A stretch of 22,349 nucleotides of DNA from Amoeboradix gromovi X-113. Lineage: Eukaryota; Fungi; Sanchytriomycota. The notes below the pieces were generated by a model, which worked only from the letters and a program-made list of their open reading frames with translations, was not told where the DNA came from and did not search any database. Where the stretch lies: contig JADGIF010000082.1 of assembly GCA_018985225.1 (NCBI GenBank), forward strand, positions 1 to 22,349, read 5' to 3'. A program made the translations under genes and the position numbers. Positions 1 to 22,349 of the stretch are shown one piece after another. Within the stretch, counting starts at the first letter, position 1, and every line of letters starts with the position of its first letter.

Positions 1-143
1 CTTCTAGTTTATTTTGAAAAGAGGAATACAATTAATGAAAGAAAATTGGTATAATAGAAGATCTTTTATTAATGATAGCATTTCCTCCGTATGGAGCACC
101 TCCTTTAAAAACGAGTTAGTCTAGTTTTTATATTTCGTGTCCC
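1..143 (-). mobile_element. Terminal part of a TIR element (MITE family), cut by the window edge
   Basis: The reverse complement of 1-143 aligns almost base for base with 10976-11119, the left end of the complete MITE. It ends in the family TIR AGTTAGTCTAGTTTTTATATTTCGTGTCCC. Confidence 0.9.
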
Positions 144-6570: not shown

Positions 6571-6600
6571 CTAGAAAGTGAACTTCAGAACAGAATATAC

Positions 6601-6650
6601 GGGACGCACTCTATTGTAACGAGACTCTCTCAAATGTTTCGAAAAAGTGA
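6601..6650. mobile_element. Isolated TIR end of the GGGAC family
   Basis: GGGACGCACTCTATTGTAACGAGAC...GTTTCGAAAAA resembles the end at 17935 (GGGACATACTCTACAAAACTAGAC...GTTTCAAAAA). Its partner end was not identified. Confidence 0.55.
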
Positions 6651-6892
6651 AATTGATAATTTCGAATACAGGCGATCCAGTGATGTCTATTGACTCTTGT
6701 TTCGTGTTGATAAAAGTAAATCTCTTCAGTCGGTTCGATGGTATAAGCAACTATGGTTTTACTTTGTGAAAATGAGACTAGAGTTGATTTCATGTGAATT
6801 ACTTTATGAAAAGAGAGTAGGATCGTGAATACTGTGTGAAAACGAAACCAAGAAAAATAATCGAGATGAGTTGATATATAACTTTTTTACTT

Positions 6893-7095: not shown

Positions 7096-8409
7096 TTAAT
7101 CATCCGTGGTCATGCCCTTATAGTTTCCCGTTCTATTAGACCAAATAAATTGTCTCAACAGACAACCGTTTTGAATTTCCAATTCGACCGCAGTCTTTTT
7201 AACAGCAAAGCAAACAAGACCAGCATGGACATAATCTTTTTCGAATTTCTTGTATTTTCCTCTTCCATCTTTTGAAAGTGCATAACTTAAACAAACATCC
7301 ATGTCAGTACCACAATAAAAGCCGGGGCCCAGTTCTGTTGCATATCTGATGCAAATTGGTTGAATACGTTGCGATATGGAGACAGCTGAATCTAAAGTTG
7401 TTGCATGGAATACAAACTCATATTCATTGCGATCAACAATCCCCATCATATCATTAATTTGACCAAATAGAATGGACTGCTTTTCAGCGTTGTTATATTT
7501 CCAGATGAATGTGTTTTTGAATGGCGTTAATGCCTCTTCATTGAAGATGATGCTTCTATCTTCGATGTCGACTAGAATAAACAATAGGCCCCAATGATCT
7601 ATCATGAGCGGATCCATATCAGATATATCTTGGATAAGTTGATCTTTAGAAATTTTAAATTCAGATAAATAAACCATGTTGTGAATTTGCTGTTTCTTTT
7701 CCAAGTAATACATAAAAGTTTTTAAATAGATAGGGCTATGTAATACACAGTTGTCTCTGTGCCTATCAGATTCCAATTCTGACTTTAAAAGCAATTGTTC
7801 CCAAACTGGACACCACACTAAATCAACAATGTTCTGATCATTATGAGTTTGACTAAATACATCAAAGTGGTCATGTACGACAAAGAATGATGAAATATCA
7901 TTACAAGTAAAGTCTAAAATGTGTTCAGCATCTCTTTTCAACATGGCACGAGAAACAAAGAAATAATGTCTACAGAAATGGTAGAGTTTAGACATTCTCC
8001 TCCTCTTAAGGTTATTTCTACGCTTTCTGACAAAATGTGTGCAGTTGCACGTAAATTTGTTGTCCTTGACTTGAACTATAGCGTCAGCTATCTCTGTTAT
8101 ACCATACCCCATTACCAGTTCAGACAATACGATAATAGAATTGGGCGAGTCCAACTTGTCTACAAAAATTAAACCAGTGATTGAATTTACAATTTCTTCG
8201 ATGTTTACCAGTGTCAAATGCTGAAAGAAACCAGTACGCAAATTCTTTTTCAAGATATTATCAGGGCGCATGGCAGCTCTAAAAGCATATTTATATTCCA
8301 GAATCTCTCGTAGTCGCCCATCTCCATGTTTCCATAATTCAAGAGGAGGTTTCAAGTAGCTATTTAGGTTATAGATAGGCTTAGTTATTCCTCCAACGAC
8401 TTCCATCAC
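7096..8409 (-). CDS. SWIM-type Zn finger + ADP-ribosyltransferase-like (DUF3990-like) protein, probably truncated or decaying
   Basis: CNC-x(n)-CRH SWIM pattern. C-terminal FVFHATT...ELGPGFYCGTD...SYA resembles H-Y class ART fold motifs. First ATG at 8406, abutting a Fanzor element end. Confidence 0.65.
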   Translation of the reverse strand: MMEVVGGITKPIYNLNSYLKPPLELWKHGDGRLREILEYKYAFRAAMRPDNILKKNLRTGFFQHLTLVNIEEIVNSITGLIFVDKLDSPNSIIVLSELVMGYGITEIADAIVQVKDNKFTCNCTHFVRKRRNNLKRRRMSKLYHFCRHYFFVSRAMLKRDAEHILDFTCNDISSFFVVHDHFDVFSQTHNDQNIVDLVWCPVWEQLLLKSELESDRHRDNCVLHSPIYLKTFMYYLEKKQQIHNMVYLSEFKISKDQLIQDISDMDPLMIDHWGLLFILVDIEDRSIIFNEEALTPFKNTFIWKYNNAEKQSILFGQINDMMGIVDRNEYEFVFHATTLDSAVSISQRIQPICIRYATELGPGFYCGTDMDVCLSYALSKDGRGKYKKFEKDYVHAGLVCFAVKKTAVELEIQNGCLLRQFIWSNRTGNYKGMTTDD

Positions 8410-8520
8410 TTGGATTTAGAAATGGTCTCAAATCGAGAATTTCCACAGAGAACTAGCAATCCTAGGTGCTCCGTTACAGTGATTGCTCACGCTTGCACTG
8501 CCCTAAGGCGGGATTGAATA
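8409..8520 (-). ncRNA. Candidate Fanzor2 omegaRNA scaffold / element right end
   Basis: Overlaps and follows the NRDHMAARNI frame. Stems CAGTG/CACTG, AGCAATC/GATTGCT and a terminal hairpin GAAATTCTC-GATTT-GAGACCATTTC. Homologous to 13830-13908. Confidence 0.6.
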
Positions 8521-8578
8521 AGGACACATATTTTATGTATATGTTCCTTGCTGCCATATGATCTCTATTGTTGCACAC
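8474..8578 (-). pseudogene. Fanzor2/TnpB C-terminal remnant (RuvC-III)
   Basis: Translates VCNNRDHMAARNIYIKYVSLFNPALGQCKREQSL*, matching the TnpB/Fanzor (D/N)RDxxAARNI motif. Confidence 0.8.
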
Positions 8579-8885
8579 GTGATAAGACTAATGACATGAA
8601 TTATTAAATAAATAGTTAGCAGATTTATTTATCGTTGATTTCTTTTGAGGACGGGTTGAAAGACACCTAATTGTTCCATGTTTGGACCAGTTCCTCAACG
8701 TTGATGAACCTATACTGCACTGTTGGTTTTTTCTTTACGTTCCATTTACCATTTGCGAAATGAAAAATATCGAGCACATGAGGTATTGGAAAAGTCATGA
8801 AATTATACAAAAATGCATACAAATTCGGGATAAATGATTTATTAAAGAAAGCAATCGAGCTGTTAATTTAAGTCAGATTTTTACG

Positions 8886-9086
8886 AGTCTATCAAGTAAA
8901 GTAGTTGGAAATATGGTGGCCACTGCGCTTGAAGTTGAGTTGTAAATAAGAGGAAGACGTTGATTAAATGTGGTGAATTATTCACTACTCAGACGTGCAC
9001 AATGCATGGTACTCTGAAGAAAACTAGCTTTGCTCATGTTTTGTGGAAATCCTTGTTTTTCTCGTATATCAGGACTTTTAGTTAGG
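8886..9086 (+). pseudogene. Internally deleted Fanzor2 remnant plus element right end
   Basis: SLSSKVVGNM, then in a shifted frame KTLIKCGELFTTQTCTMHGTLKKT (E at 8975), matching E-x-Y/F-T-S-x-T-C-x-x-C-G. The tail TGTGGAAATCCTTG...CAGGACTT matches the tail of the 13792 copy. Confidence 0.72.
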
Positions 9087-9112
9087 AACTTATTCCTTGA
9101 AACCCACTTCAT

Positions 9113-9928
9113 ATGAACAGAGAAATTTCATCATTACATTTGCAGAAACCGCACTTAATCAGTGTAAAACCAACCACGTCTATTGGTCAAACGCTTGAAA
9201 TACTAAAAAAACACAACATAATTTCAATTCCAATCCAATCTCATGACAAGGATCACGGTTTTATTGGAATCATATCAGCCTTTGATATTTGCTGTTATAT
9301 ACTAAGAAAGAACAATTTTGATCATCACATTGAGAGCGCCTTGAGCTTGAATAGCGATTCGGAGTCATTTGTTTTAATCGAGGTTGCTGCATTTGATACC
9401 TTAAGAACAGTGATGAACCACTTGTCTACGGTACATAGACTTTTGGTTGTCGATAAGAAGAGACAGTTTTTAATCTCCCAATCAGACATAATTCGCTATT
9501 TTTATGAACATCCAATAAAAGAGGAAGAGTGCCGTAAGACTCTTGAACAAGTCTTTCCGGTCAGAGACATAATGTCTATCACGACCACATTGTCAGCTAA
9601 AGAGGGATTCGAGAAGCTAAAAACTTCGAATCATTTGGCATTGCCAATAGTTGATGAAAATAACAAATTTGTGCATGTATTAAGCAGTGCAGATCTTAGA
9701 GGTATTGATCAGCAAACTTTCAAACTCTTGGATCTAAAAATATTGGACTATTTGACTAGCATTAAAAAACAGAAACCAAAGACTGCGACATTGCAAACGA
9801 CAGTTCAGGATGTGATGAAGTTGAGTGTAGCTAATCTAGCGCACCGTACATTTGTATTGAGTGCGCAGGGAGAAATAATCAATGTGATTTCATTGACTGA
9901 TTTAATCAAATTGTTTTTAAAAGAATAA
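9113..9928 (+). CDS. Tandem CBS-domain protein (AMPK-gamma/Sds23-like)
   Basis: Four CBS repeats: NIISIPI..FIGIISAFDI, VHRLLVV..LISQSDII, LALPIVDE..VLSSADL and AHRTFVL..VISLTDLI. Confidence 0.88.
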   Translation: MNREISSLHLQKPHLISVKPTTSIGQTLEILKKHNIISIPIQSHDKDHGFIGIISAFDICCYILRKNNFDHHIESALSLNSDSESFVLIEVAAFDTLRTVMNHLSTVHRLLVVDKKRQFLISQSDIIRYFYEHPIKEEECRKTLEQVFPVRDIMSITTTLSAKEGFEKLKTSNHLALPIVDENNKFVHVLSSADLRGIDQQTFKLLDLKILDYLTSIKKQKPKTATLQTTVQDVMKLSVANLAHRTFVLSAQGEIINVISLTDLIKLFLKE

Positions 9929-10098
9929 ATAGTATATCCACCGTCTAATACACAGGACTCTTGATTAATTTTCTGATATTTTTTTGATTACACGATGACT
10001 TTTGTGTAATACTTTTGGCTTCAACATGTATAAAACTTATGCACTCCTCGGTAAGCGGTACTTTCAATAACCCGAATTTAAAGCTAAAAGTGAACAAC

Positions 10099-10944
10099 AT
10101 GCTGCATAAGCACATAAAAGATTATAAAATAATCAAAGCTTTGGGTACAGGTGCCAATGCTACAGTTTATCTGGGAGAAATAGTCGACCATGAAAAACAT
10201 AATAAACATTCATTTCTACACCATCACCATAACCATAATAGCGCACTGCAGAACTATGTAGCTATAAAACAGCTGCATACAGAAGATCAAAAACATGTGC
10301 AGCATTTGACTGAAGAGTATTGCATAGCAGAATCACTGCATCATGAGAACATAATCCGAGTTCTCGATCTGTTTTATGAACACAGATGGTGCTATGTAAG
10401 TGAATATGGTGGAGTAGAATTATTCAAATGGATAGAAGACGGAATGACTACACTCAAATGTAACGCTATTCTAAAACAATTGCTAAGTGCCATTAAATAT
10501 CTAAGTGACAAGGGCATATGCCATCGCGATATCAAACCAGAGAACATATTGTGCAAAGACGATGTTTGTCGCATATGTGACTTTGGTTTAGCTGTTCGAT
10601 ATAAAACGGAATTTGATGATGAAGAGCAACTTGTACACGGTGTAGAAGGCAGCGATCCATACATGTCACCTGAAATATGGAGTGGTACTTATAGAGGTCC
10701 GCCCGTAGATGTGTGGGCTGTAGCAATTGTTTATACCGCAATGGTGTTGAAAAAGAAAGTGTGGTGTAAGGCTACTGAAGATGATAAATATTATATGCAA
10801 TTTATACAACAGGGTAGAAAATGGAGAGATTTATCAAAATTAACTGATGCGGCGTTGACATTGGTCATTAGCATGTTAGACAGTGATCCTGATAAAAGAA
10901 TAACTGCAAAAGACGCATTAAACTATACTAACTTTAATTTGTAA
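10099..10944 (+). CDS. Ser/Thr protein kinase, fungal HAL/NPR-like family
   Basis: GxGxxAxV, VAIK, HRDIKPEN, DFG, GSDPYMSPE and VDVWAVAIVY..M....W..A...D..Y. ATG 10099 preferred over the TTG start in the track. Confidence 0.88.
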   Translation: MLHKHIKDYKIIKALGTGANATVYLGEIVDHEKHNKHSFLHHHHNHNSALQNYVAIKQLHTEDQKHVQHLTEEYCIAESLHHENIIRVLDLFYEHRWCYVSEYGGVELFKWIEDGMTTLKCNAILKQLLSAIKYLSDKGICHRDIKPENILCKDDVCRICDFGLAVRYKTEFDDEEQLVHGVEGSDPYMSPEIWSGTYRGPPVDVWAVAIVYTAMVLKKKVWCKATEDDKYYMQFIQQGRKWRDLSKLTDAALTLVISMLDSDPDKRITAKDALNYTNFNL

Positions 10945-10975
10945 GCGAATAAATTGTTGAAATGTTACAGGATCT

Positions 10976-11461
10976 GGGACGCCAAATATAAAAACTAGAC
11001 TAACTCGTTTTTAAAGGAGGTGCACCATACAGAGGAAATGCTATCATTTATAAAAGATCTTCTATTATACCAATTTTCTTCCATTACTTTCAATCCCCTC
11101 TTCAAAATAAAAGTAGAAGACCCTGCATCTCGTTCAAATTTATGTGGTCTTTGAGCATCTAAGCAAAAGGTGCATTTTATTAGACGGTACTCTTATCTAT
11201 TTCATTTTGTAATGTTGTACTAACATCATTACTCTTATCTATTCTAGTTTTTACAGAGTAATAGTGATATTTTATTTGAAATAAAGATTGGATGAAAGAG
11301 CAAGAGAATAGCTGTACAGAATATTTATTTTCCTTTTATACTCGTCAACTCCGCAACTTGCTGAATGTCCACTCGCCTGTTAAGTCCATAAAATTAATAA
11401 AGCTGAAATAATGTTCCAAGTTGTTATAGAAAGTTAGTCCAGTTTTTATATTTGATGTCCC
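10976..11461. mobile_element. Complete 486-bp MITE with 30-bp TIRs and a 4-bp target-site duplication
   Basis: Left GGGACGCCAAATATAAAAACTAGACTAACT versus right AGTTAGTCCAGTTTTTATATTTGATGTCCC (27/30 inverted match). ATCT on both flanks (10972-10975, 11462-11465). No ORF. Confidence 0.93.
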
Positions 11462-11924
11462 ATCTGTTTGTTGAGATATTTTAATAAAAGAATGTCTAGA
11501 TTTTTTTGTTAGACGTATCCCGAGACAAGATCAGATTTTGCCTTATGTACAAGAGCAATAGCAATTCGCCTTTATTCTAGGTTGGGAATCTTTGTAATAC
11601 ATCGCAAAAATAAGAACATGCTTGTGCTTAGTACACAAGAAGAGAATTGGAAGTTAAGACCTTACACACCATCTTACCTTTGATAAGTGACTACCATTCT
11701 GTTTTAGTGTTACATTATCAATGTAGATTCATTCACAAAATAGGGCAAGTTGTGAAGCCTGATTACAGCACTGATGAAAATCTGGTTGGCAACAAAATGC
11801 ATTTAAATGCCAAGACTCCACGGTACTAAATAAATACGTTAATCGTAATAGAAATCTAAAGCGATGGGGTTATTTTCAGATTGCATCTCTCATTTTATCA
11901 TCCCGATTTGAAACATTCATCAAC

Positions 11925-13764
11925 ATGCAGCAGCAGTCAAATTTGAAAAAAACAAAAATGGAATCAAATGATTTATTTAATGATCTAGTCTCCATCAAAC
12001 CGAAAAAACCAGCGACCAATAAATTACCTACACCGATGACTGCCCAAGTGAACAAGAACAATTCTCACCATGATTTTGATGTTGGCCTACTCAACAATGG
12101 TAATTCTAATACTGATAATACCGCTAGTGTTGCTAAGACACCTACCGTATCTGCTGATCCCCCTTCAAATGATGATTATTTAAACTTATTTCACCTACAG
12201 CCACAAGCGCAACAGATTAGCAGCGATTTCAGCATATTTAATAATTCAAGCAACTCAAATAACCATGTCCGTAGTAGTACAGCTCCGCCTAACTTGTCCG
12301 CACATTTTGATTTACTATCTGATCAGCCAATAACTCACTCCAAACCGGTTCAGGCGACTCCTCCATCAGCTGATCAAGCACCTTCACCAAAACATATAGT
12401 ACAGATTTCTAAGCCCATCAAATCTACGTCTCCTTTATTACCTCCAGAATTACCCTTAATTGACCAACTAACGCAAATGGGATTTGATCCTATTCAATCC
12501 AAGCAGGCAATACAAATTCACCCTTCTTTAAATGAAGCAGTTGATTATCTCGTTAATGGTCAAAAACCCAACAATCAACCTTCGTCTTCAAACCTAGTGT
12601 TTGGCTTATTAAGCAAGGCATCCAAAATTGCTAAAAGTACAATTGCTAGCACTACTAATACTTTTTCAACCTCCATTGCCAGCACTGGCTATTTCAATCC
12701 CGTTGATCCTAATAAAGATGGCCTATATAACAACAAACCAACTGCAACTAAGCCGAATCATCATTTGGTTGATGATACCGCAAGAAGAAAGGCAAAGGAG
12801 TTAGAGCAAATCAAGTTGCACTGGTACACACAAATTGAGAACAATTTGCTGATTTCTATTTGTGACGCAAAGCAAAATGGCGATGACTTCGTGAAACAAG
12901 GACAATATGCTTCGGCAATCACATGCTACAGTGGCGTAGTTGTGGTGGCCAAACATCCGTTGATGAGTTTAATAAAATTAGAAATTGCAGGTTGTCAATT
13001 AGAGACGGGACTATACAAGGAATGTTTATCAAACTGCAATGATGTGATACAAATGACGTGCATGGATGTAAATGAGCAATTTCCCATGCTTATGATTAAA
13101 TCACTGGTTGACACTAATATAGATGGATTTCAATTTAATAAAAAACAGTTAATGCAAACATTGGTGTTAAAAGCAAAGGGTTTAGAAGGACTAGAGAAAT
13201 ATGAACAACTCTTGGAATTCGTTGGTAAATTAAAGTCATGCCAGGTGGCAGAAGCAGAACAAGAACTAAGAATACTAAGAGATGTACACAGCAGAGTGAA
13301 TCAACACATGAACAAAATAAATAATACCATACCTATTACAACGACAATACAGGTAAATCAATATGTTCAGGACAGTAAGCGAGTGCAAGAGATGAGGTCT
13401 GAACAAGCACTCAAGGAGAAGCAGCAGCAACAAGAACTTTCAATAAAAGACGAAGTGGATCTAAGAATTAAACAGTGGAGTATTGGTAAAGAACATAACA
13501 TTCGGATATTGTTGACCACTATTGGACCCTTAATGAAAGAGATTGGAATAGAGTGGGTGGATATCCCGATATCCGGGATTATGCTGCCTTTACAGATAAA
13601 AAAAGCTTACATGAAAAGTGTCAGTAAACTACATCCTGACAAGGTAAAAATAAATAATGCAGTTACAGAATGCAGATGTAAGACAATCTTCTATGGCACA
13701 ACATGTGTTTAGTATATTGAACACAGCCTATGAAGCATTAAAAGCACAGCACCCAGAATTATAG
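11925..13764 (+). CDS. SWA2: Auxilin-like clathrin-uncoating factor (UBA, TPR-like and J domains); exons 11925-13643 and 13663-13764
   Basis: UBA (QLTQMGF..AVDYL), TPR-like (KQNGDDFVKQGQY), and J domain W..GKEHNIRILL..IKKAYMKSVSKLHPDK, continuing after a 19-nt intron as LQNADVRQSSMAQHVFSILNTAYEALK. Start could be ATG 11958. Confidence 0.85.
13644..13662 (+). other. 19-nt spliceosomal intron
   Basis: GTAAAAATAAATAATGCAG. Removal restores the last J-domain helix. Confidence 0.88.
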
Positions 13765-13791
13765 AAAATAAACAGTTTATTAATGATATCT

Positions 13792-14035
13792 CTGATTTCA
13801 AGTCCTGGCTTACTAGAATATCAAGGATCTCCACAGAGAAATACAAGCTAGTCGCTACATTACCGTGTTTCCTCGTGCCCGGGTACCTTAAGGCGGGATC
13901 GAATAAAGATGCAAGTAGACTCGTCTCCAAATTGTTTTCTTCCGAATTCCGCACCATACGCACGTCTGACTAGTAAATGCTCCATAATATTCAATCAAAT
14001 TTTATCACAGAAAATTGCCATGGTGAGAAAAGGAA
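13792..14035 (-). pseudogene. Fanzor2 remnant with candidate omegaRNA tail
   Basis: LIEYYGAFTSQTCVWCGIRKKT (13960-13974 = TSQTC), then a deletion, then SLFDPAL and a tail homologous to 8441-8523 and 9040-9086. Confidence 0.8.
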
Positions 14036-14155
14036 AACATCATTTTCATGAATTACAAAACTGTAGAAAGAGGACTCTCGGAGCTTCGAAATGCGCGTAA
14101 TCACGAAAAGTTGTTTATTCAATGAAAGTTCTTATACTGCACAGGCCTTATTGTG

Positions 14156-14566
14156 TTAAAGGGGGACACCTTGAGTAACAGTCTGGGCAGGCCCGGTATT
14201 ACTTGAAGTAGAGCCAGTTTGAGCGATTGCATTAGCAGGTAAATTCGATGGTTTAATGGTGGTCTGGACAGGTCCGGTATTACTTGAAGTAGAGCCAGTC
14301 TGAACCACCACGTTTGCAGGTACATTTAACGGTTTAGGCTTCCATCCCAGCAGCTTTTTTATTTTACTAAATACTAGATGATTATCTGGTGTTAAACCCA
14401 TAATACCGGCTAAAATGCTAACACCCATTAAGCTCCAAGATACAGCATTTCCATATCGTATAAGCTTACTGGTCGATGAGTCAGCTGGTGACATTGCAGG
14501 AAATTTTTCCACTGACTTAGGAAGAGTAGGAAGGGCATACATACATAACAATAACTGCAAAAACAT
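14156..14566 (-). CDS. Small secreted or membrane protein with two 27-aa-period repeats
   Basis: Signal-like N-terminus, an internal hydrophobic segment, and repeats PANVVVQTGSTSSNTGPVQT / PANAIAQTGSTSSNTGPAQT. Confidence 0.7.
   Translation of the reverse strand: MFLQLLLCMYALPTLPKSVEKFPAMSPADSSTSKLIRYGNAVSWSLMGVSILAGIMGLTPDNHLVFSKIKKLLGWKPKPLNVPANVVVQTGSTSSNTGPVQTTIKPSNLPANAIAQTGSTSSNTGPAQTVTQGVPL
14181..14327. repeat. Intragenic direct repeat, 81-bp period
   Basis: CCGGTATTACTTGAAGTAGAGCCAGT is identical at 14193 and 14274, with similar flanks. Confidence 0.9.
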
Positions 14567-14913
14567 GAGGGAAAAGGAGATGAAATTATTTCAAGTACAA
14601 CTTGCAACACAAATGAATACAGATTGCACAAGATATTTTGTCACGCAATTGTTTAGAATAGTCTTTGCATGATCTGGAAATCACTGTATAGCAACAATTT
14701 CAAAGATACCAGAGAACTTCAATAAGACCTTACAATTTACCAATCATTTTGTGGAATTCAAAACCTTTGTGTAACGATAAGTAGAATTGTTAGCGCTAGC
14801 GGTTTCCAAAAATTCAGCCGTTACTGCAATGGCAAATATTTGCCATATTCGCAAGAACTCATCGGATAATTTCAGAATTTTCAATACTCATTGCGTCCCT
14901 AGACAGTACTGTA

Positions 14914-16041
14914 ATGATTATACCTCTATACATTTTAATTCTCTATGTTAAAGCTCAGCAAATGCAACAAGTTTTTGATTTAAATGAATGCATAAAGAAA
15001 CCAGATTTAGATCTGGGAATGATTGCTAGTATAGGTGACAGTGTGTTAGCGGGGTATGGTAGTCGACAGTATGCTGCGTGGCCCTTTTTTAGTCCCCTAA
15101 ATTTCCGTGAAGACAGAGGTGCCACCCTTGTAAATGGCGGTGATGAAGATATGTGGAGTCTGTACAAGATTGCCTCCTATTTTAATCCGGAATTAGAAGG
15201 TAAATCGACGGGCACACATTTCTTTAATCTCTGCAGAAAATTTCTTTGCTTTTGGCCATTCAACAGTTATCGTAAAACTGACGGTCTAAATGTTGCAGCC
15301 ACAGGCTCTTTTGCTAGTGATATTATGCGGCAAGCTAAGGAACTGGTGAAAAGATCTAACGCTTTAATAGTTAAGAAACCAGAACTTATTAATAAGTGGA
15401 AACTGGTAGTCTTTTTGGTAGGTCTAAACGACCAGTTTAACTTTTGCAAGGGGCACGAAAGTTCGCTGGAATATTTTGAGTACTACGTCCGCAATTTTCT
15501 TAATTATCTAAGGCAAAATCTGGATCATGTTATCGTAGATCTTCTGAGCCTATGGAACATGGACAAGATGGTTGACTTAAGCTCAAGACATCCTAGTTGT
15601 ATGCACAACAATAGACAGAACTTGTTCAAATCTGTCGCGCCTTGTCCGTTTGACAAAAAAAATGGCACTGAGTTTAGAAAGACGATGAAAGCTTACCAGA
15701 TGGGACAAAATGAAATATTAAGAAACTTAGCAAGTGAGTATCAGAATGGAACAGCATGGTCCAGAAAGGAAAAGATGAGCAAGCCATGGGTAGCTAAACC
15801 TAGCACGTTTAAGGTTATTTATGATCCAAGTGCAGAAGAGATGGACTTGAATTTGTTGAACTGGAATTCGTTAACTGATACAGACTGCAGCCATCCTACC
15901 AAGGAAATGCATGAGAGACTGGCTAGTGTATATTGGCATAACTTGTTTTTATCAAGCAAAGACAAGCTGAGAAATCAATTTCAAGCATTTCAAAGTGGAT
16001 TCATTAAATATACCTGTCCAACTAGTATCAAGTTTGATTAA
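14914..16041 (+). CDS. Secreted GDSL/SGNH lipase, phospholipase B1-like
   Basis: Signal peptide plus blocks IGDSVLAG, LNVAATG, WKLV..LVGLND and DCSHP. Confidence 0.9.
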   Translation: MIIPLYILILYVKAQQMQQVFDLNECIKKPDLDLGMIASIGDSVLAGYGSRQYAAWPFFSPLNFREDRGATLVNGGDEDMWSLYKIASYFNPELEGKSTGTHFFNLCRKFLCFWPFNSYRKTDGLNVAATGSFASDIMRQAKELVKRSNALIVKKPELINKWKLVVFLVGLNDQFNFCKGHESSLEYFEYYVRNFLNYLRQNLDHVIVDLLSLWNMDKMVDLSSRHPSCMHNNRQNLFKSVAPCPFDKKNGTEFRKTMKAYQMGQNEILRNLASEYQNGTAWSRKEKMSKPWVAKPSTFKVIYDPSAEEMDLNLLNWNSLTDTDCSHPTKEMHERLASVYWHNLFLSSKDKLRNQFQAFQSGFIKYTCPTSIKFD

Positions 16042-16091
16042 GAATAAATTTGTTGTACTGTAATACTTTTCAGTTTTTAAAGGCCGAGATC

Positions 16092-16910
16092 ATGTCACAT
16101 TCATTTAAAGAGGCAAATCAAATTGCAAAAGAAAGAATAGAAACTACTTTTAAATCACCCAGAGAGTATAACAAACTAGCAAAGCAAATTCGAGAATATT
16201 TAGTTAAATCAGAAGAGTCAACAAAAGTATTACCGCTGTCAGAATCTTTAAAAGCAAAACCCAGAACAACATCTGCCAAGAAGATTGAAGAAGATTTGGG
16301 CAATGCGGCGCACAGAAAGAATTTGATGGAATACAAAACTGAATTAAGGGGGCAAATAACATTGTTAACAGTGGTATCACTTTTGAACAATACAAAAAAT
16401 AAAGTGGAAGCCAAAAGAGTAGAAAGAATTCAAGTTCGGAATAAGGTGTTGGCAGCAGAGGTAATAGCTAAGTGGTACAGAAAAATACTAATTCGACGAA
16501 GAGAAGCTAAAAGAGTCTGGGCGATTGCGACAATCCTACCACAACTACTGAGATTTGGACTTGCAAGAAGAGAAATAAAGCGTCAAAAGTATGCGCTGAT
16601 CGTGTACAACTTCATTCAAGAGTCATTCAACAGTGGTATTTTGATTAACCTTGTACATGCTTATCAGACAAAGGTCGTCAACTGTCAAGGAATCATCAGG
16701 GTTTTTTTGGCAAAAAATAAGGCTAAATTTGAATTGAGAGTTTTGCAGGTTGAGCAATACGAGAGAAAAACTAAGAAAAGATACAAAACAGTGATTGGCA
16801 CCTCCAAGACACTTTTAATCAAAAACTTGATGAAAGAAGAAAGAAAAAGAGATTCTACTGCGCATCACTTGTTGTTTACACAGCAGGAGTTATCAAAGCA
16901 TTTTGATTAA
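16092..16910 (+). CDS. Basic helical protein with degenerate IQ-like motifs
   Basis: AAEVIAKWYRKIL and VVNCQGIIRVFLAK resemble IQ motifs. First ATG at 16092. Confidence 0.6.
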   Translation: MSHSFKEANQIAKERIETTFKSPREYNKLAKQIREYLVKSEESTKVLPLSESLKAKPRTTSAKKIEEDLGNAAHRKNLMEYKTELRGQITLLTVVSLLNNTKNKVEAKRVERIQVRNKVLAAEVIAKWYRKILIRRREAKRVWAIATILPQLLRFGLARREIKRQKYALIVYNFIQESFNSGILINLVHAYQTKVVNCQGIIRVFLAKNKAKFELRVLQVEQYERKTKKRYKTVIGTSKTLLIKNLMKEERKRDSTAHHLLFTQQELSKHFD

Positions 16911-16942
16911 TTTATTAAGTCCTAAATAAATTTACAATTTTA

Positions 16943-17932
16943 TTATTTGCCGCTTACTTCAAATAAAACCAAAGATAGTGCCATTATTACCATTCCTGCC
17001 ACTACACTCTTGCTTACATATCTATCTTTTGGATCGTACTTGTGAGCTGTCGGTAATCTATATTAATCATTAAATTACAATTCTGCAATGGATATGTAAA
17101 TCATCATTCCTGCAACTAAAGCAAACATGAACGCAAATCCGACACTTTCTGTAACATCGTCTGAGGTGCTAGAGGTCCACTTAAGAATATAATAAGCAAT
17201 AAGTCCGCCAAGAGGTTCCGTTAGTCCAGATGCAAATCCTATCAGAAATGACTTTAGTTTACTTTTAGTGGCGTAATAGACAGGTAGTGCGACAGCAATG
17301 CCTTCAGGTATGTTGTGAATAGCAATTGCAACTGCCAAAGAGGCACCCAGCTTAGGATCTGAAAGAGTAGCAAAGAATGTAGCTATACCCTCTGGGAGAT
17401 TGTGCAACGCTATAGCTAAAGCAGAGAGTATCGACATTTTGGCCAAGGAAGCAGCATTTCTTTCGGATTCATCTTGTACTAAATTATCAGCTGATGAAGA
17501 GACAGAAGAGGTTTGTTGTGCAATTCGTTTCTTTGCAACAGATTTTGCTTTCCTCTTTAAAGGCTTATGGGGAGAAGTGTCTTTGTCAGTAAGTATATCT
17601 GCTGAAGGTTCCAGGTGGAGATTGTCGTCCGGAATCATGAAATGTACAATGAAATCTAAGAATACACAAACCAGCATGCCAGAGAAGAATGCAACTGTAG
17701 CGCAGAGCACCGGACTATTCTCTGTAGCTTTTATGTTTCTAAACATCTCAACACTTTCTCGGTAAATCTCTGTAAAGCTTATATAAATCATAACACCTGC
17801 GGACAAACCGAGGCATAATCCAAGTACTAAGTTATTATTTGCGTCTCTCAAAGCAAACGGAATTAGAGCTCCTAAACCAGTAGCGCCACCTGCAGCCAAT
17901 GTTAATAAGAATGCGAGCAAAACTGGCTCCAT
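16943..17932 (-). CDS. zupT: ZIP-family zinc transporter (ZupT/GufA type); exons 17932-17079 and 17057-16943
   Basis: SAGVMIYISF, ALHNLPEG, AIHNIPEG and SGLTEPLG. A 21-nt intron restores ELLPTAHKYD and the final TM helix. Confidence 0.92.
17058..17078 (-). other. 21-nt spliceosomal intron
   Basis: GTAATTTAATGATTAATATAG on the minus strand, containing an in-frame TAA. Confidence 0.88.
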
Positions 17933-18014
17933 ATGGGACATACTCTACAAAACTAGACAAACTTTCTAAAACAAGTTTCAAAAATGTTGAGTAGCCCTGC
18001 TATAATGTCCCATA

Positions 18015-18700
18015 TCAAACACCTAGAACCCATGCCTTAGGCAAACACTGTTTGTTACTAATTCCTCTTCTATTCCAGTATGGTTCTGTGCCATGCTTCA
18101 CTACACTGCGAATGTCATAAATATCATTATAACACGCATTTACAACTTGGTTTGCGACTGAATCACAGCTGGTACACTGACTACCATGGGTATCTAAAAT
18201 ATCAATTAATCTCGGATATTTGCCGTCATTACCATAGCAGTGGTAACAGGTTTTGGCTGTTTTTAATTTAGGAGGAAGCTAGGGCAGCAAGTTTCTACCG
18301 AAAGACACATTGATTTCTTATTTGGGACACTAAGATAGCATTTTCTGTTGTAATCGCCATCACCATAGTAAACTGATTTGCTATCAAAATATTTAACTCT
18401 ACATAGTAGTTTTCTTTCTACCGCTTACTTCACGTTCTTAGACAATATATTTCTGAACAAAAGCAATCTTAACGTCAAAATAGTTGAATTTCATTTAATC
18501 TAGAATGCCTGTAAACGAGGCTCACCTGCTTCTCACATCCCATATCCGTATCTTGGCAATGAAAAGTGCATATGCAAGTATCTAAACAATCCATAAATCT
18601 AAGAAAGGTCAATAGTTTTCTAGAGACCTGTACTAGTACGTTATTTATCCAGAGTATTTTCGTTTTTCTCGAATGTAAGACAGCCACTGGTATCCTAAAT
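18015..18700 (-). pseudogene. Fanzor1 pseudogene (C-terminal half)
   Basis: With stops and frameshifts: VYYGDGDYNRKCYLSVPNKK...FLLN*, KTAKTCYHC...QCTSCDSVANQVVNACYN...RSVVKHGTEPYWNRR. This is the GDG..P.K segment, Zn finger and decayed RuvC-II/III of Fanzor1. The 5' limit is approximate. Confidence 0.85.
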
Positions 18701-19171
18701 GTACTTTTGAGATCAAAGTTGTACACTATGAGTTTTGTAAAATAAATAAATATTGCTTTAATTGAATGAACCCGTCTCCAAGTTTACTTCTGTCAAGGAA
18801 ATTTACTCCTCGAGCAACTTTTAAGCCCAGTGTATCCATTTATACACCTTGACGACCTTTACACTGTGGTAACTAGACCAGGCTGGTTTCATGTTAGTTA
18901 CACTGTGAAACTCAGACTAGGAAAAGTTTCAAAAAATTTGGGACACATTTTAACCCAATCAACATTTCAGATTAGTGTTTCACACTTTTAACCCAATCAT
19001 ATTAAGAGATTTTTTACACAAAGAGCACGCAATGTACATTTTACCTTGTTGTCAGTCTTTTAATAGAACAGAGTATTTACACACGAGCTATAATCCAGTC
19101 AATTCTAAAACAATTGTCGTATGTATTACGAGACAAGATGGCGCAGGAAGACATCCCACATGAAAATAAAT

Positions 19172-19399
19172 CTACATCATTAGATTTATTCGTTTGGCTA
19201 CTTCCAAAGCTTGTGTCTTTGTTGCAAACCCCCATCGCTTGTTCATTATCAGAGGGGTACTTTTAGTATACGTAGTTTTATATTTATAAAGTGATTTTAT
19301 CCAACCAGCTTTTGGCCCTTTTCCTTTATATTTCAATGTAACAACATAATAGAATTCATTCTTTTTGTATTTTTTTACCTTCCTGATGGTAACTGACAT
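19172..19399 (-). CDS. Small basic protein with an AP2/integrase-arm-like motif
   Basis: 75 aa, Lys/Tyr-rich, beta-strand-like N-terminal part ending in KRWGFATKTQALEVAKRI. Confidence 0.45.
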   Translation of the reverse strand: MSVTIRKVKKYKKNEFYYVVTLKYKGKGPKAGWIKSLYKYKTTYTKSTPLIMNKRWGFATKTQALEVAKRINLMM

Positions 19400-19823
19400 T
19401 TATATAATTATATCATTAAAATAATTTCTTTAACTACCAGCCCGACTTGTGTGAAATTACCAAGACTTGTCCAATATTAAATCGAAATCCATTGGATTAT
19501 GTTCGATAACATTGAATACATGGTTTCTTTGTATTAAATAATTTATTAATTAGCTCCTTCATCGTCAGTCTCATTCTCATCTCCATTTTCTACTGCAACT
19601 GCTACTATATTAATGAAATAAAAAGATCTTCTACTTTAAATTCAACCGTGTAAAATATTAATCTTTGAAATTCAATACAATTTGTCTAGTCTAGTTTTAC
19701 AGAGCAAGTCCCAAATATCATCAAATCTTTTACATAACTTACTATTTAATTATGAGACTTAAAACCCAATTCATATTTTGATTTGTTTGTAAATCTTTAC
19801 TCCCTCCTTTGAGACTGTCTCAT

Positions 19824-21653
19824 ATGTCAAAAATGTACCTCTACAACATAGAACTAGTCTCAGAACTACAAATAGATCATCAGAAGCTACACAACGATTT
19901 GACTTGGGTTTTGCAATCAGTCGTAACTGAAAAAGCTGAATCTAATAAAACTCAAATAAAATCAAATGTTCTAGCTTCCCAATCAATAGCTGAGTTAACA
20001 GACACTGTCGTGACTGGGAATTATTTTGCTTTGGGTTTTGGATCTTCTGCATATCTTAGTTCCACTGAAATCTCAAATGAAGTCATTAGCAACGAGAAGA
20101 AATCTATTCAGCTTGAGTTTCGTCATAAAGAATGTTATGAAGTTATTTCATTCGATATACGGATGAGGAAAGAGTTTCGAAAGACTGTTGATGCAATCAA
20201 ATTCAAAGCTGTTGCTTTTAATAAGAGAATTACTTTGGAAGATAATGCTAGGGAATTCTTGGTTCAACATATGAACGACCCAAAAAGGTTACAAATCTTG
20301 GATGATCTTAAAGGGCTTTGCTACTCAGATCCAGTTAATTGTACTGTCATTGTTACCCTAAAGGGGCATAACTATGTTTTTATTACACTAGAGGAAATAA
20401 ATAATAAACAACCCCAATTAAAACGTCCTCGAAAAAACCCAAAGGATCGCGCTAGATTATTGCAAAAAAAAGATGATTTCCTTTCAAATACAGTAAATTG
20501 TATTCAAGGAACGATGTATTGTCCACATGGTAAACATGCTGTGAATTCTGGTTTAAAAAAAAGAAATCAAAGATTGTATTGTCCTATTCATATAAATATG
20601 TGGATTAGAGGAAGCATATCTCATTTTGGAGATTTTAGAAAAATCCCACGAACTGAAGATTACAAGAGCGTCACAGATTGGTTTTCTTTAGACTTGGAAG
20701 AAGTATTATCAAAATTTGGAATAAAAGAAGATTTTTTTCTTAAATATTATAATCTGTCCAGTTTTGATGATATCTATGAAGAGGGCTCCTACTTATCTGA
20801 ACAATCAATAATAGCATCTGTTGAAGACTATTTAATCGAAACTACCATAGACAAAGACGTCGACGTTTTAAAGGATATATTCTGCGAAGATCATAGTTTT
20901 TTTGAAGAAGTTTTGCAAGAATTTCAAAAGACGGATGATCCTATTTGGATTTGTATTGTCGAGCTGTATTATAGCAAAATGAATCCAATTACAAAAGAAA
21001 AATTAGAGGAGCATTTTCATGGTAATGTGAGCGTCTCGCAGTCTATCGATATAAAGCACCCGAGTTGTGAGAAATGTTGCTTGGATGGTCAAAATAGTAA
21101 AGCATTTATAAGAGAACGTTGTGAAGACGATCTCAATGATAGCACCAAAGAAAACTATATTATTATTTACCATGGCAGCAATGGAGATACTTGGATAGAA
21201 TGGTTGGATCGCTGTGTTCCACTTCGACAAGCTAGAGCTGGAGATTTTAATTTGATTGATGAATCTGCCTTTTATTGTTCATTTGACTATGCATCTGCAG
21301 AAGATATGGCTTTTAAACGAAACAATAGGAACTTTGGGGTTGTAGTCAGCTATTGGCTTCATCGTGATTATTCGAAAGATTCGAACTTTTATAACTTTGA
21401 GACTACAACAGACAAATGGGAGAAATCGATTGTAGGATATAGAAGGAACCCTTTAATTGATAATGATATTCGGGCAAAACTCTGTTTACAAGGTCCTAGA
21501 TGTGGCAGAATATTTCAAGTTACGCAAGGAACAGAAGAACCGAAAGAACATGATAATTTTGGCCATCAAATTTGTTTTAAAGAGCAAACATTCTTACAGA
21601 AATACGCTGAATTGAGATCAATAGATTTTATTTTACCAATTGAGACGACATAA
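19824..21653 (+). CDS. Zn finger + ADP-ribosyltransferase-like (DUF3990-like) protein, apparently intact
   Basis: YCPHG...LKKRNQRLYCPIH parallels the paralogue's finger. C-terminal IIYHGS...GDFN...AFYCSFD..SA..MA...GP...QICF. First ATG at 19824. Confidence 0.75.
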   Translation: MSKMYLYNIELVSELQIDHQKLHNDLTWVLQSVVTEKAESNKTQIKSNVLASQSIAELTDTVVTGNYFALGFGSSAYLSSTEISNEVISNEKKSIQLEFRHKECYEVISFDIRMRKEFRKTVDAIKFKAVAFNKRITLEDNAREFLVQHMNDPKRLQILDDLKGLCYSDPVNCTVIVTLKGHNYVFITLEEINNKQPQLKRPRKNPKDRARLLQKKDDFLSNTVNCIQGTMYCPHGKHAVNSGLKKRNQRLYCPIHINMWIRGSISHFGDFRKIPRTEDYKSVTDWFSLDLEEVLSKFGIKEDFFLKYYNLSSFDDIYEEGSYLSEQSIIASVEDYLIETTIDKDVDVLKDIFCEDHSFFEEVLQEFQKTDDPIWICIVELYYSKMNPITKEKLEEHFHGNVSVSQSIDIKHPSCEKCCLDGQNSKAFIRERCEDDLNDSTKENYIIIYHGSNGDTWIEWLDRCVPLRQARAGDFNLIDESAFYCSFDYASAEDMAFKRNNRNFGVVVSYWLHRDYSKDSNFYNFETTTDKWEKSIVGYRRNPLIDNDIRAKLCLQGPRCGRIFQVTQGTEEPKEHDNFGHQICFKEQTFLQKYAELRSIDFILPIETT

Positions 21654-21667
21654 AAGCATAATAATTA

Positions 21668-21925
21668 GAAGGATACACCTCGAAGAAATGCTACAATTGC
21701 AAGAAGGATGCCAATGGGAAAGAATATGGAAAACGAAAGCGACTTAGGACATGCGAAACATGCTCCACAGTCGTCGATCGCGATGTAAACGCAAGCTTGA
21801 ATATACGCGACGTGTTTATTAGTTATACGACAGAGTATAAAAAGCCTAGCTGGCAAATTCGTCCTTTATTGGATGATATCAATATTAAAGGAGCGAGAGG
21901 TCTCAATGGACGCCTCAAGCAATGA
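21668..21925 (+). pseudogene. Fanzor/TnpB C-terminal fragment with intact motifs (Fanzor1-like tail)
   Basis: 85 open codons without ATG: EGYTSKKCYNC...RTCETCSTVVDRDVNASLNIRDVF...KPSWQIR, with RuvC-II Glu, CxxC/CxxC and RuvC-III Asp. Confidence 0.93.
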
Positions 21926-22154
21926 CTTTTATAGCACTAGTTTTACATGTCCCGAATGAAGAAGAAAACAACGAGAGTGAATAAATTGATACATTTCAAG
22001 TAATCTAAATCAACTCTAATTTTTATTAAAAGAAAGTATTTATTCTTTTTTTATTGTCTTGTAGAAAAGTCAAACTGATACCAGTCACGGTGAAATGTTA
22101 ATAGTGAGTAGTTTTTAAATTCTTTCTGTGTGATTTTATTGGTTTGAATAGTTG

Positions 22155-22251
22155 GTCTAGTTTTTATATTTGAATTGCAATGTTATTTTCAAATTGAAAT
22201 ATCTCAAAATGAAAATTTTCGACTTAGTCTAGTTTTTATATTTGATGTCCC
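22155..22251. mobile_element. TIR right end with a subterminal repeat
   Basis: TTAGTCTAGTTTTTATATTTGATGTCCC ends at 22251, nearly identical to the MITE TIR. The 19-mer GTCTAGTTTTTATATTTGA occurs at both 22155 and 22227. Confidence 0.85.
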
Positions 22252-22349
22252 ATTTGTATGTATTTTTATATAATTTCGTGACAACGGAATCAATGGATGT
22301 AACTCTGAATATATCAAATCTAAAGAAATAACTAACAGTTGTAGTATAC

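Follow-up and report, generated by a model that had tools for sequence, protein, structure and literature searches.

Two-ended, internally deleted Fanzor elements at very high copy number in the genome of the sanchytrid Amoeboradix gromovi

How do the tails of RNA-guided nucleases come to be scattered through a genome, and does any nuclease still make use of them? The question is raised by a 22,349-nt stretch of DNA from Amoeboradix gromovi X-113 (contig JADGIF010000082.1, here called the window; C1151 in a 10.55-Mb, 1319-contig, low-GC eukaryotic assembly), in which several relics of Fanzor, the eukaryotic counterpart of TnpB, had been noticed. The original prediction was that these relics formed a local cluster, that every copy had kept its 3' end and lost its 5' end, and that the genome might hold a large dispersed set of guide-RNA loci served in trans by intact Fanzors of two clades. 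The assembly is a short-read one whose contigs end at repeats, and the window itself begins and stops inside elements. What the window and the genome around it contain are two-ended deletion derivatives at very high copy number, which in one family (A) have decayed neutrally and in another (E) carry a one-sided flank specific to that family. We consider it probable that they are internally deleted, non-autonomous copies from at least five Fanzor families, mobilized in trans in past bursts, retained for a time through RNA-guided action, and by now mostly decaying debris.

The relics themselves are real. Translation shows TnpB/Fanzor C-terminal motifs at all five of the places where they had been claimed, and when the window was compared with shuffled versions of itself using protein profiles built from outside proteins, with obvious fragments from this genome removed, four of the five scored clearly above the shuffles. 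The Fanzor2-like profile gives 11.9 bits at 8504-8581(-), 9.8 bits at 13936-14004(-) and 5.5 bits at 8945-9001(+), against 4.8 for the best of 30 shuffles. The piece at 8886-9030 is marginal as protein and clear as DNA (77-80% identity with family A copies at E values down to 3e-17), and a family A DNA profile matches all three Fanzor2 pieces far above shuffles. With the Fanzor1-like profile (best shuffle 6.3), the family C relic reaches 69.8 bits at 21668-21886(+), where the PF07282 cut-off is also passed at 21677-21925, and the relic near 18 kb reaches 10.6 bits at 18063-18266(-), with a further match at 18314-18385; a DNA search with the latter relic matched itself alone, and tblastx links it to other loci (E 3e-14). 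The piece placed at 18015-18700(-) stands between 18021 and 18400, where it has profile support, and lacks such support from 18400 to 18700. Two clades are represented, as had been supposed: Fanzor2 in the family A pieces and Fanzor1 in the 18-kb and 21.7-kb pieces, which belong to two families. Five further pieces had been overlooked (8-143, 10976-11461, 11722-11891, 22150-22251 and 22252-22349).

Over the whole genome PF07282 returns 560 candidates from all families, and of the 150 that were scored all 150 lie above the cut-off. By profile and by end-sequence counts such relic loci run to hundreds, as had been supposed. That such matches arose by chance, or from contaminant bacterial or viral contigs, is a reading to which the genome lends some colour, since it was probably whole-genome-amplified and was decontaminated by filtering (PMC8371127), and since single fragments reach just 5-12 bits as protein. 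It is nevertheless largely refuted, and we regard it as very improbable: the DNA profiles far exceed shuffles, the neighbours of Fanzor pieces are eukaryotic genes (kinases, CBS, ZIP, GNAT), depth is flat at 33-34 across unique sequence, and contigs of the sequencing run bridge the element-flank junctions. EukProt lists Fanzor proteins of this genome under SPAdes/TransDecoder names; our literature search found no Fanzor paper on sanchytrids, and Rfam gave no matches.

Which part of the elements was lost is seen most clearly in family A, whose best copies are all one element of 569-624 bp. Its left part contains the start of an IS607 TnpA gene, joined by a deletion to a Fanzor2 tail (8.7 bits, best shuffle 6.2). 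The 35 two-ended copies have sharp ends and unrelated flanks, start with CAG and end with GAG, and show neither inverted repeats nor a visible duplication; by analogy with IS607, these ends would fit AG as the core and CAG as the target motif. Counts of 25-mers across the genome give 421 left ends and 441 right ends, and the RuvC-I region of the family is present at only 4 places, compared with the 560 PF07282 candidates of all families, which together indicate that the element lost its middle rather than its 5' end. The idea that only 3' ends were retained is contradicted by these numbers, by copy 1 of the window, with its full left end and TnpA start, and by family E, in which both inverted repeats are present; for transposon ends 5' pieces are as common as 3' pieces, an outcome that had been named in advance as counting against that idea. 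Nor is there a local cluster, because the four family A copies in the window match the genome background, 4.3 per 22.3 kb in loci that were fetched for other reasons.

The family A copies in the window (Table 1) are damaged in different ways. Copy 1 has kept RuvC-III but lost its zinc finger and the final ~28 nt of its right end, and its deletion subtype recurs in loci L006 and L007. It lies inverted on the 5' side of copy 2, which could explain why the latter has lost its left part. Copy 3 may have a left-end remnant near 14020-14126 (a weak match, 3.3 bits). In good copies the right end folds as three hairpins; in copies 2 and 3 it folds no better than shuffles, and with the end of copy 1 missing as well, an intact scaffold-guide junction is found in none of the three. 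Covariation in family A right ends (94.5% paired) does not exceed shuffles, a comparison with low power at about 90% identity. The nearest neighbours among copies are at most 93.5% identical (at least 6.5% different). When changes were counted against majority sequences, computed solely for counting mutations among transposon copies, the ratio in the retained frame was 0.87 for private changes, close to neutral, and 0.24 for all changes together, which suggests several once-coding parents followed by decay. The longest family A copy seen, at L057 (C385), is broken and has its TnpA part inverted relative to its Fanzor part. A further IS607-Fanzor2 family (B) comprises about a dozen longer, broken copies, among them those at L033, L036, L040-L043 and L047 (C459, C392, C1028, C689, C373, C690, C404), and PF00239 matches 12 loci in the genome.

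Family E tells a similar story with Fanzor1. The element at 10976-11461, which looks like a plain miniature inverted-repeat transposable element, is in truth a Fanzor1 ghost: a relic of the second CxxC and RuvC-III lies at 11064-11207, just inside the right repeat, and the right end forms a hairpin. Exact 21-mers occur 461 times for the left end and 593 times for the right end, giving at least 461-593 copies, and a protein search yields 911 candidates. In a tree the neighbours of the family are two full-length proteins from outside and a fragment. Family E elements often sit inside family A elements (many joints of 8560-8863 with 10975 are found genome-wide), which implies that E spread after A or alongside it. 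Covariation was detected in 0 of 20 pairs of the family E right end, again with low power at this identity. In viral contigs we found no family E repeat or relative, and four loose repeat matches there have no Fanzor nearby. One ENA metagenome contig (L103) encodes a Fanzor of the E clade at full length (P0113), flanked by C-ATGT and with ends that are related; its neighbours, a dCMP deaminase, a U-box protein and AAA_25, may indicate a giant virus.

The hundreds of insertions in family E reveal an asymmetry. CA-NNN precedes 425 of the 461 left ends (92%) as against 201 of the 593 right ends (34%), and two outside full-length E-clade genes are likewise preceded by C-ANNT. At the left ends of family D, which have the same type of terminus, the base at that position is T in 5 of 6 cases and C in none of the 6. 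We take the one-sided C to be the best sign of past Fanzor action on family E loci, and predict C-ANNT as the target motif of family E and CAG as that of family A. The alternative is an asymmetric transposase: it alone would have spread the mini-elements, no Fanzor ever having acted, and the C would reflect asymmetric capture of the target by a transposase with two differing ends. Any DNA transposon normally yields two-ended deletion derivatives; the mirror base at family E right ends, at 34%, exceeds the expectation for 35% GC and so points to a partly symmetric transposase preference; and some E subtypes lack part of the upstream hairpin. We think such hitchhiking unlikely all the same, because the base before the duplication tracks the Fanzor clade (C for E and the two outside genes, T for D) despite like termini, and because a hairpin right end has been kept in both E and F with different sequences.

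Table 1. Fanzor-derived elements and related repeats in the window
Feature	Position	Strand	Description
Family E right end	8..143	+	Truncated by contig start
Family A copy 1	8430..8862	-	Left end complete (8862); TnpA helix-turn-helix start 8654-8716; RuvC-III tail 8504-8581
Family A copy 2, older	8868..9087	+	Zinc-finger start fused by deletion to decayed right end
Family E complete 486-bp ghost	10976..11461	-	~30-bp inverted repeats with GGGAC termini; 4-bp duplication AGAT after C
Family D decayed 3' end and right end	11722..11891	+	24 bits, E 7e-9; shuffles at most -1.4
Family A copy 3	13795..13997	-	About 70-78% identity to other copies; right end decayed
Family F Fanzor1 relic	17935..18400	-	Frameshifted; zinc finger, decayed RuvC-III, then 77-nt hairpin right end (fold z -3.6)
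GGGAC-type inward repeat	19689..19713	-	Possible family F left end (medium confidence); flanks ATTT/ATAT, one mismatch
Family C Fanzor1 relic	21667..21925	+	Only clearly 3'-only piece; 14 bp after host open reading frame; left end absent
Family E left-end-type inverted repeat and second partial one	22150..22251	-	Inserted at C-AAAT within family A copy 4
Family A copy 4	22252..22349	+	Left-end region only; split by family E end, truncated at contig end

GRGAC-type inverted repeats bound the elements of families D, E and F, and D and E have 4-bp duplications, mostly ANNT; whether F has one depends on its uncertain left end. The hairpin right end of F closes in a GGGAC-type repeat, and its layout recurs in its relative L096. 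The family C relic is 91% identical to C496, and its longest relatives (C305 and C744) are broken. The first ATG of an open reading frame for a ZIP zinc transporter falls inside the family F right-end repeat (17935-17941), and the next ATG is probably the start. A separate, unrelated Fanzor1-like family with a long tree branch, internally deleted, is found at L024:274-1170.

Are there nucleases that could still use these ends? Intact Fanzors of both clades do exist elsewhere in the genome, as had been anticipated. Two are Fanzor1 proteins, of 685 aa (C363) and 734 aa (C1184), and the third (C542) is an IS607 element with a TnpA that matches PF00239 and a Fanzor2 whose best solved match is ApmFz2 (9b0l). 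All three contain the whole Fanzor motif, D-x(125-275)-TS-xx-C4 zinc finger-x(5-50)-RD, with the DPG and the shifted E, and the window relics hold only parts of the C-terminal half. A profile of family D and its relatives matches 8gkh, 9cer and 9cf0 (E 6e-47 to 1e-34), and the top matches of the predicted fold of intact family D are SpuFz1 (E 8.5e-17). The relics of C, E and F, which are short fragments, fall on the Fanzor1 side of the tree, where proteins from outside are closer to them than intact D is. Tail identity is about 43% between D and C and 54% between C542 and A, and families A, C and F have no right-end sequence in common with the intact genes that we saw. Only family D shows both intact genes and deleted derivatives, with a right end common to both.

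It might be supposed that intact Fanzors load the loci in trans today as a functioning guide-RNA repertoire dispersed over the genome, which perhaps serves the host. SpuFz1 works with ghost omegaRNAs in human cells (PMC10432273), hundreds of right ends in A. gromovi have retained a foldable structure, and the catalytic residues are in place in C363, C1184 and C542. Family D has ghost-like derivatives as well as short contigs that are 89-98% identical to the intact gene, and contig C1157 may hold an intact E-clade gene. Against this, the intact genes seen belong to other families, and the abundant families A and E do not share their right-end scaffold; cross-service by the intact genes was rejected on this ground. 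In three window copies of family A the scaffolds are broken; over the family private mutations are neutral, and the right end (0.92-0.96) is barely better conserved than the left end (0.92-0.93). The guides, moreover, would be random flanks, with matches at empty sites only, and the runs searched for the window sequence gave a single DNA run and no RNA run. We find a present-day supply of guides in trans unsupported, and a repertoire of this kind quite unlikely.

The scenario of deletion, bursts and decay accounts for both what was kept and what was lost. A transposase supplied in trans and needing both ends in cis would preserve both ends; in family A it may have been the serine recombinase TnpA, in D, E and F one that is Sola2-like. 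The Fanzor tail was probably kept through its overlap with the right end and the omegaRNA. As long as each family had an intact Fanzor of its own, ghost omegaRNAs probably directed it to cut empty alleles beside the target motif; this would have favoured keeping the insertion and left the one-sided C ahead of the left ends of family E. Once the matching nucleases were lost or rare, the copies would have drifted neutrally, and today they are probably mainly selfish debris and no guide library of the host. Several points weigh against this scenario. An assembly broken at repeats may have collapsed young identical copies and intact parents, so the absence of such parents is not proven. A 436-aa E-clade frame, open and lying where contig C1157 begins, is a possible matching gene. 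Outside the window good folds persist in many copies of families A (z to -2.6) and E (z to -5.4), and the absence of covariation has little power at about 90% identity. An asymmetric transposase could yield the one-sided C, and the comparison with family D consists of 6 sites only.

Among other features of the window, two more repeat families with GGGAC-type termini, or near such termini, lie at 6591-6781(+), matching L034, and at 228-574, matching L020/L082; no Fanzor motif was seen in either. The intact 614-aa open reading frame at 19809-21653(+) was considered as the missing 5' part of a Fanzor and rejected, being a member of a small gene family of its own, with intact distant paralogues on C426 and C1317 and broken ones on C240 and C497, and has a weak C-terminal match to DUF3990 (ADP-ribosyltransferase-like). 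An open reading frame of 437 aa at 7096-8409(-), without a Pfam match, begins at the very point where copy 1 of family A is missing its right end; inspected by eye, it shows an H..GFY motif resembling those of ADP-ribosyltransferase folds, and it and the 614-aa frame do not align. At 14181-14336 two 75-nt direct repeats within a 136-aa open reading frame are an ordinary coding repeat.

The closest known parallel is provided by the Spu-1 ghosts of Spizellomyces punctatus, which carry CA ahead of their left repeat (Saito et al., 2023, PMC10432273). The structure of a ghost locus, in which both ends are present, the Fanzor gene is absent and a motif stands before the left end, is seen in families E and A alike. 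Family E and the Spu-1 ghosts are both about 500 nt long, with ~30-nt inverted repeats and a one-sided motif before the left repeat. They differ in copy number (at least 461-593 against 134), in their duplications (4 bp and variable in family E, TA in Spu-1) and in that family E retains a RuvC-III coding relic, unlike the Spu-1 ghosts. Moreover, S. punctatus has 19 full-length genes and expressed omegaRNA, whereas family E is known here from DNA, with C1157 as the candidate for its gene. Family A finds its counterpart in the eukaryotic IS607-Fanzor2 elements (Bao and Jurka, 2013, PMC3627910; ApmFz2 9b0l; Yoon et al., 10.1101/2023.08.09.552727), with which the A. gromovi IS607-Fanzor2 elements share a TnpA overlapping Fanzor2 and the shifted catalytic glutamate, and which, like family A, show no inverted repeats and no visible duplication. 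Family A differs from them as an internal deletion derivative of ~600 bp, of which this fungus-like genome has over 400 copies in a well-kept state, and in having an apparent AG core and CAG motif in place of GG and GGG.

Sola2 transposons have GRG termini. They also produce a 4-bp duplication (PMC3627910), and elements here show both features. In the Sola2-Fanzor1 elements of Dictyostelium fasciculatum and Polysphondylium pallidum, as here, Fanzor1 lies in inverted-repeat elements with AT-rich 4-bp duplications and the transposase region is often deleted (PMC3627910); in A. gromovi the repeats are ~30 bp and the duplications ANNT, compared with strictly AWWT in Sola2-Fanzor1. In our view A. 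gromovi illustrates an already known type of element richly and at striking density; it does not present a new system, and the copies in the window are mostly dead.

The natural role of Fanzor is open, and help in trans for ghost loci is a proposal that Saito et al. (PMC10432273) made and could not test; hundreds of independent insertions in one genome give unusual statistics for the question. The one-sided signature, 92% against 34%, differs between Fanzor1 families with like ends and leads to motif predictions that can be tested, while three apparently intact, distant nucleases (two Fanzor1 and one IS607 Fanzor2) are there for biochemistry. It is a long shot, in our estimation, that about a thousand still-foldable ghost omegaRNA loci persist of which at least one family (E or D) is transcribed and loaded by an intact Fanzor1. 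If that were true, A. gromovi would hold the densest natural repertoire of Fanzor guides known to us, with a target motif that could be read from hundreds of insertion sites.

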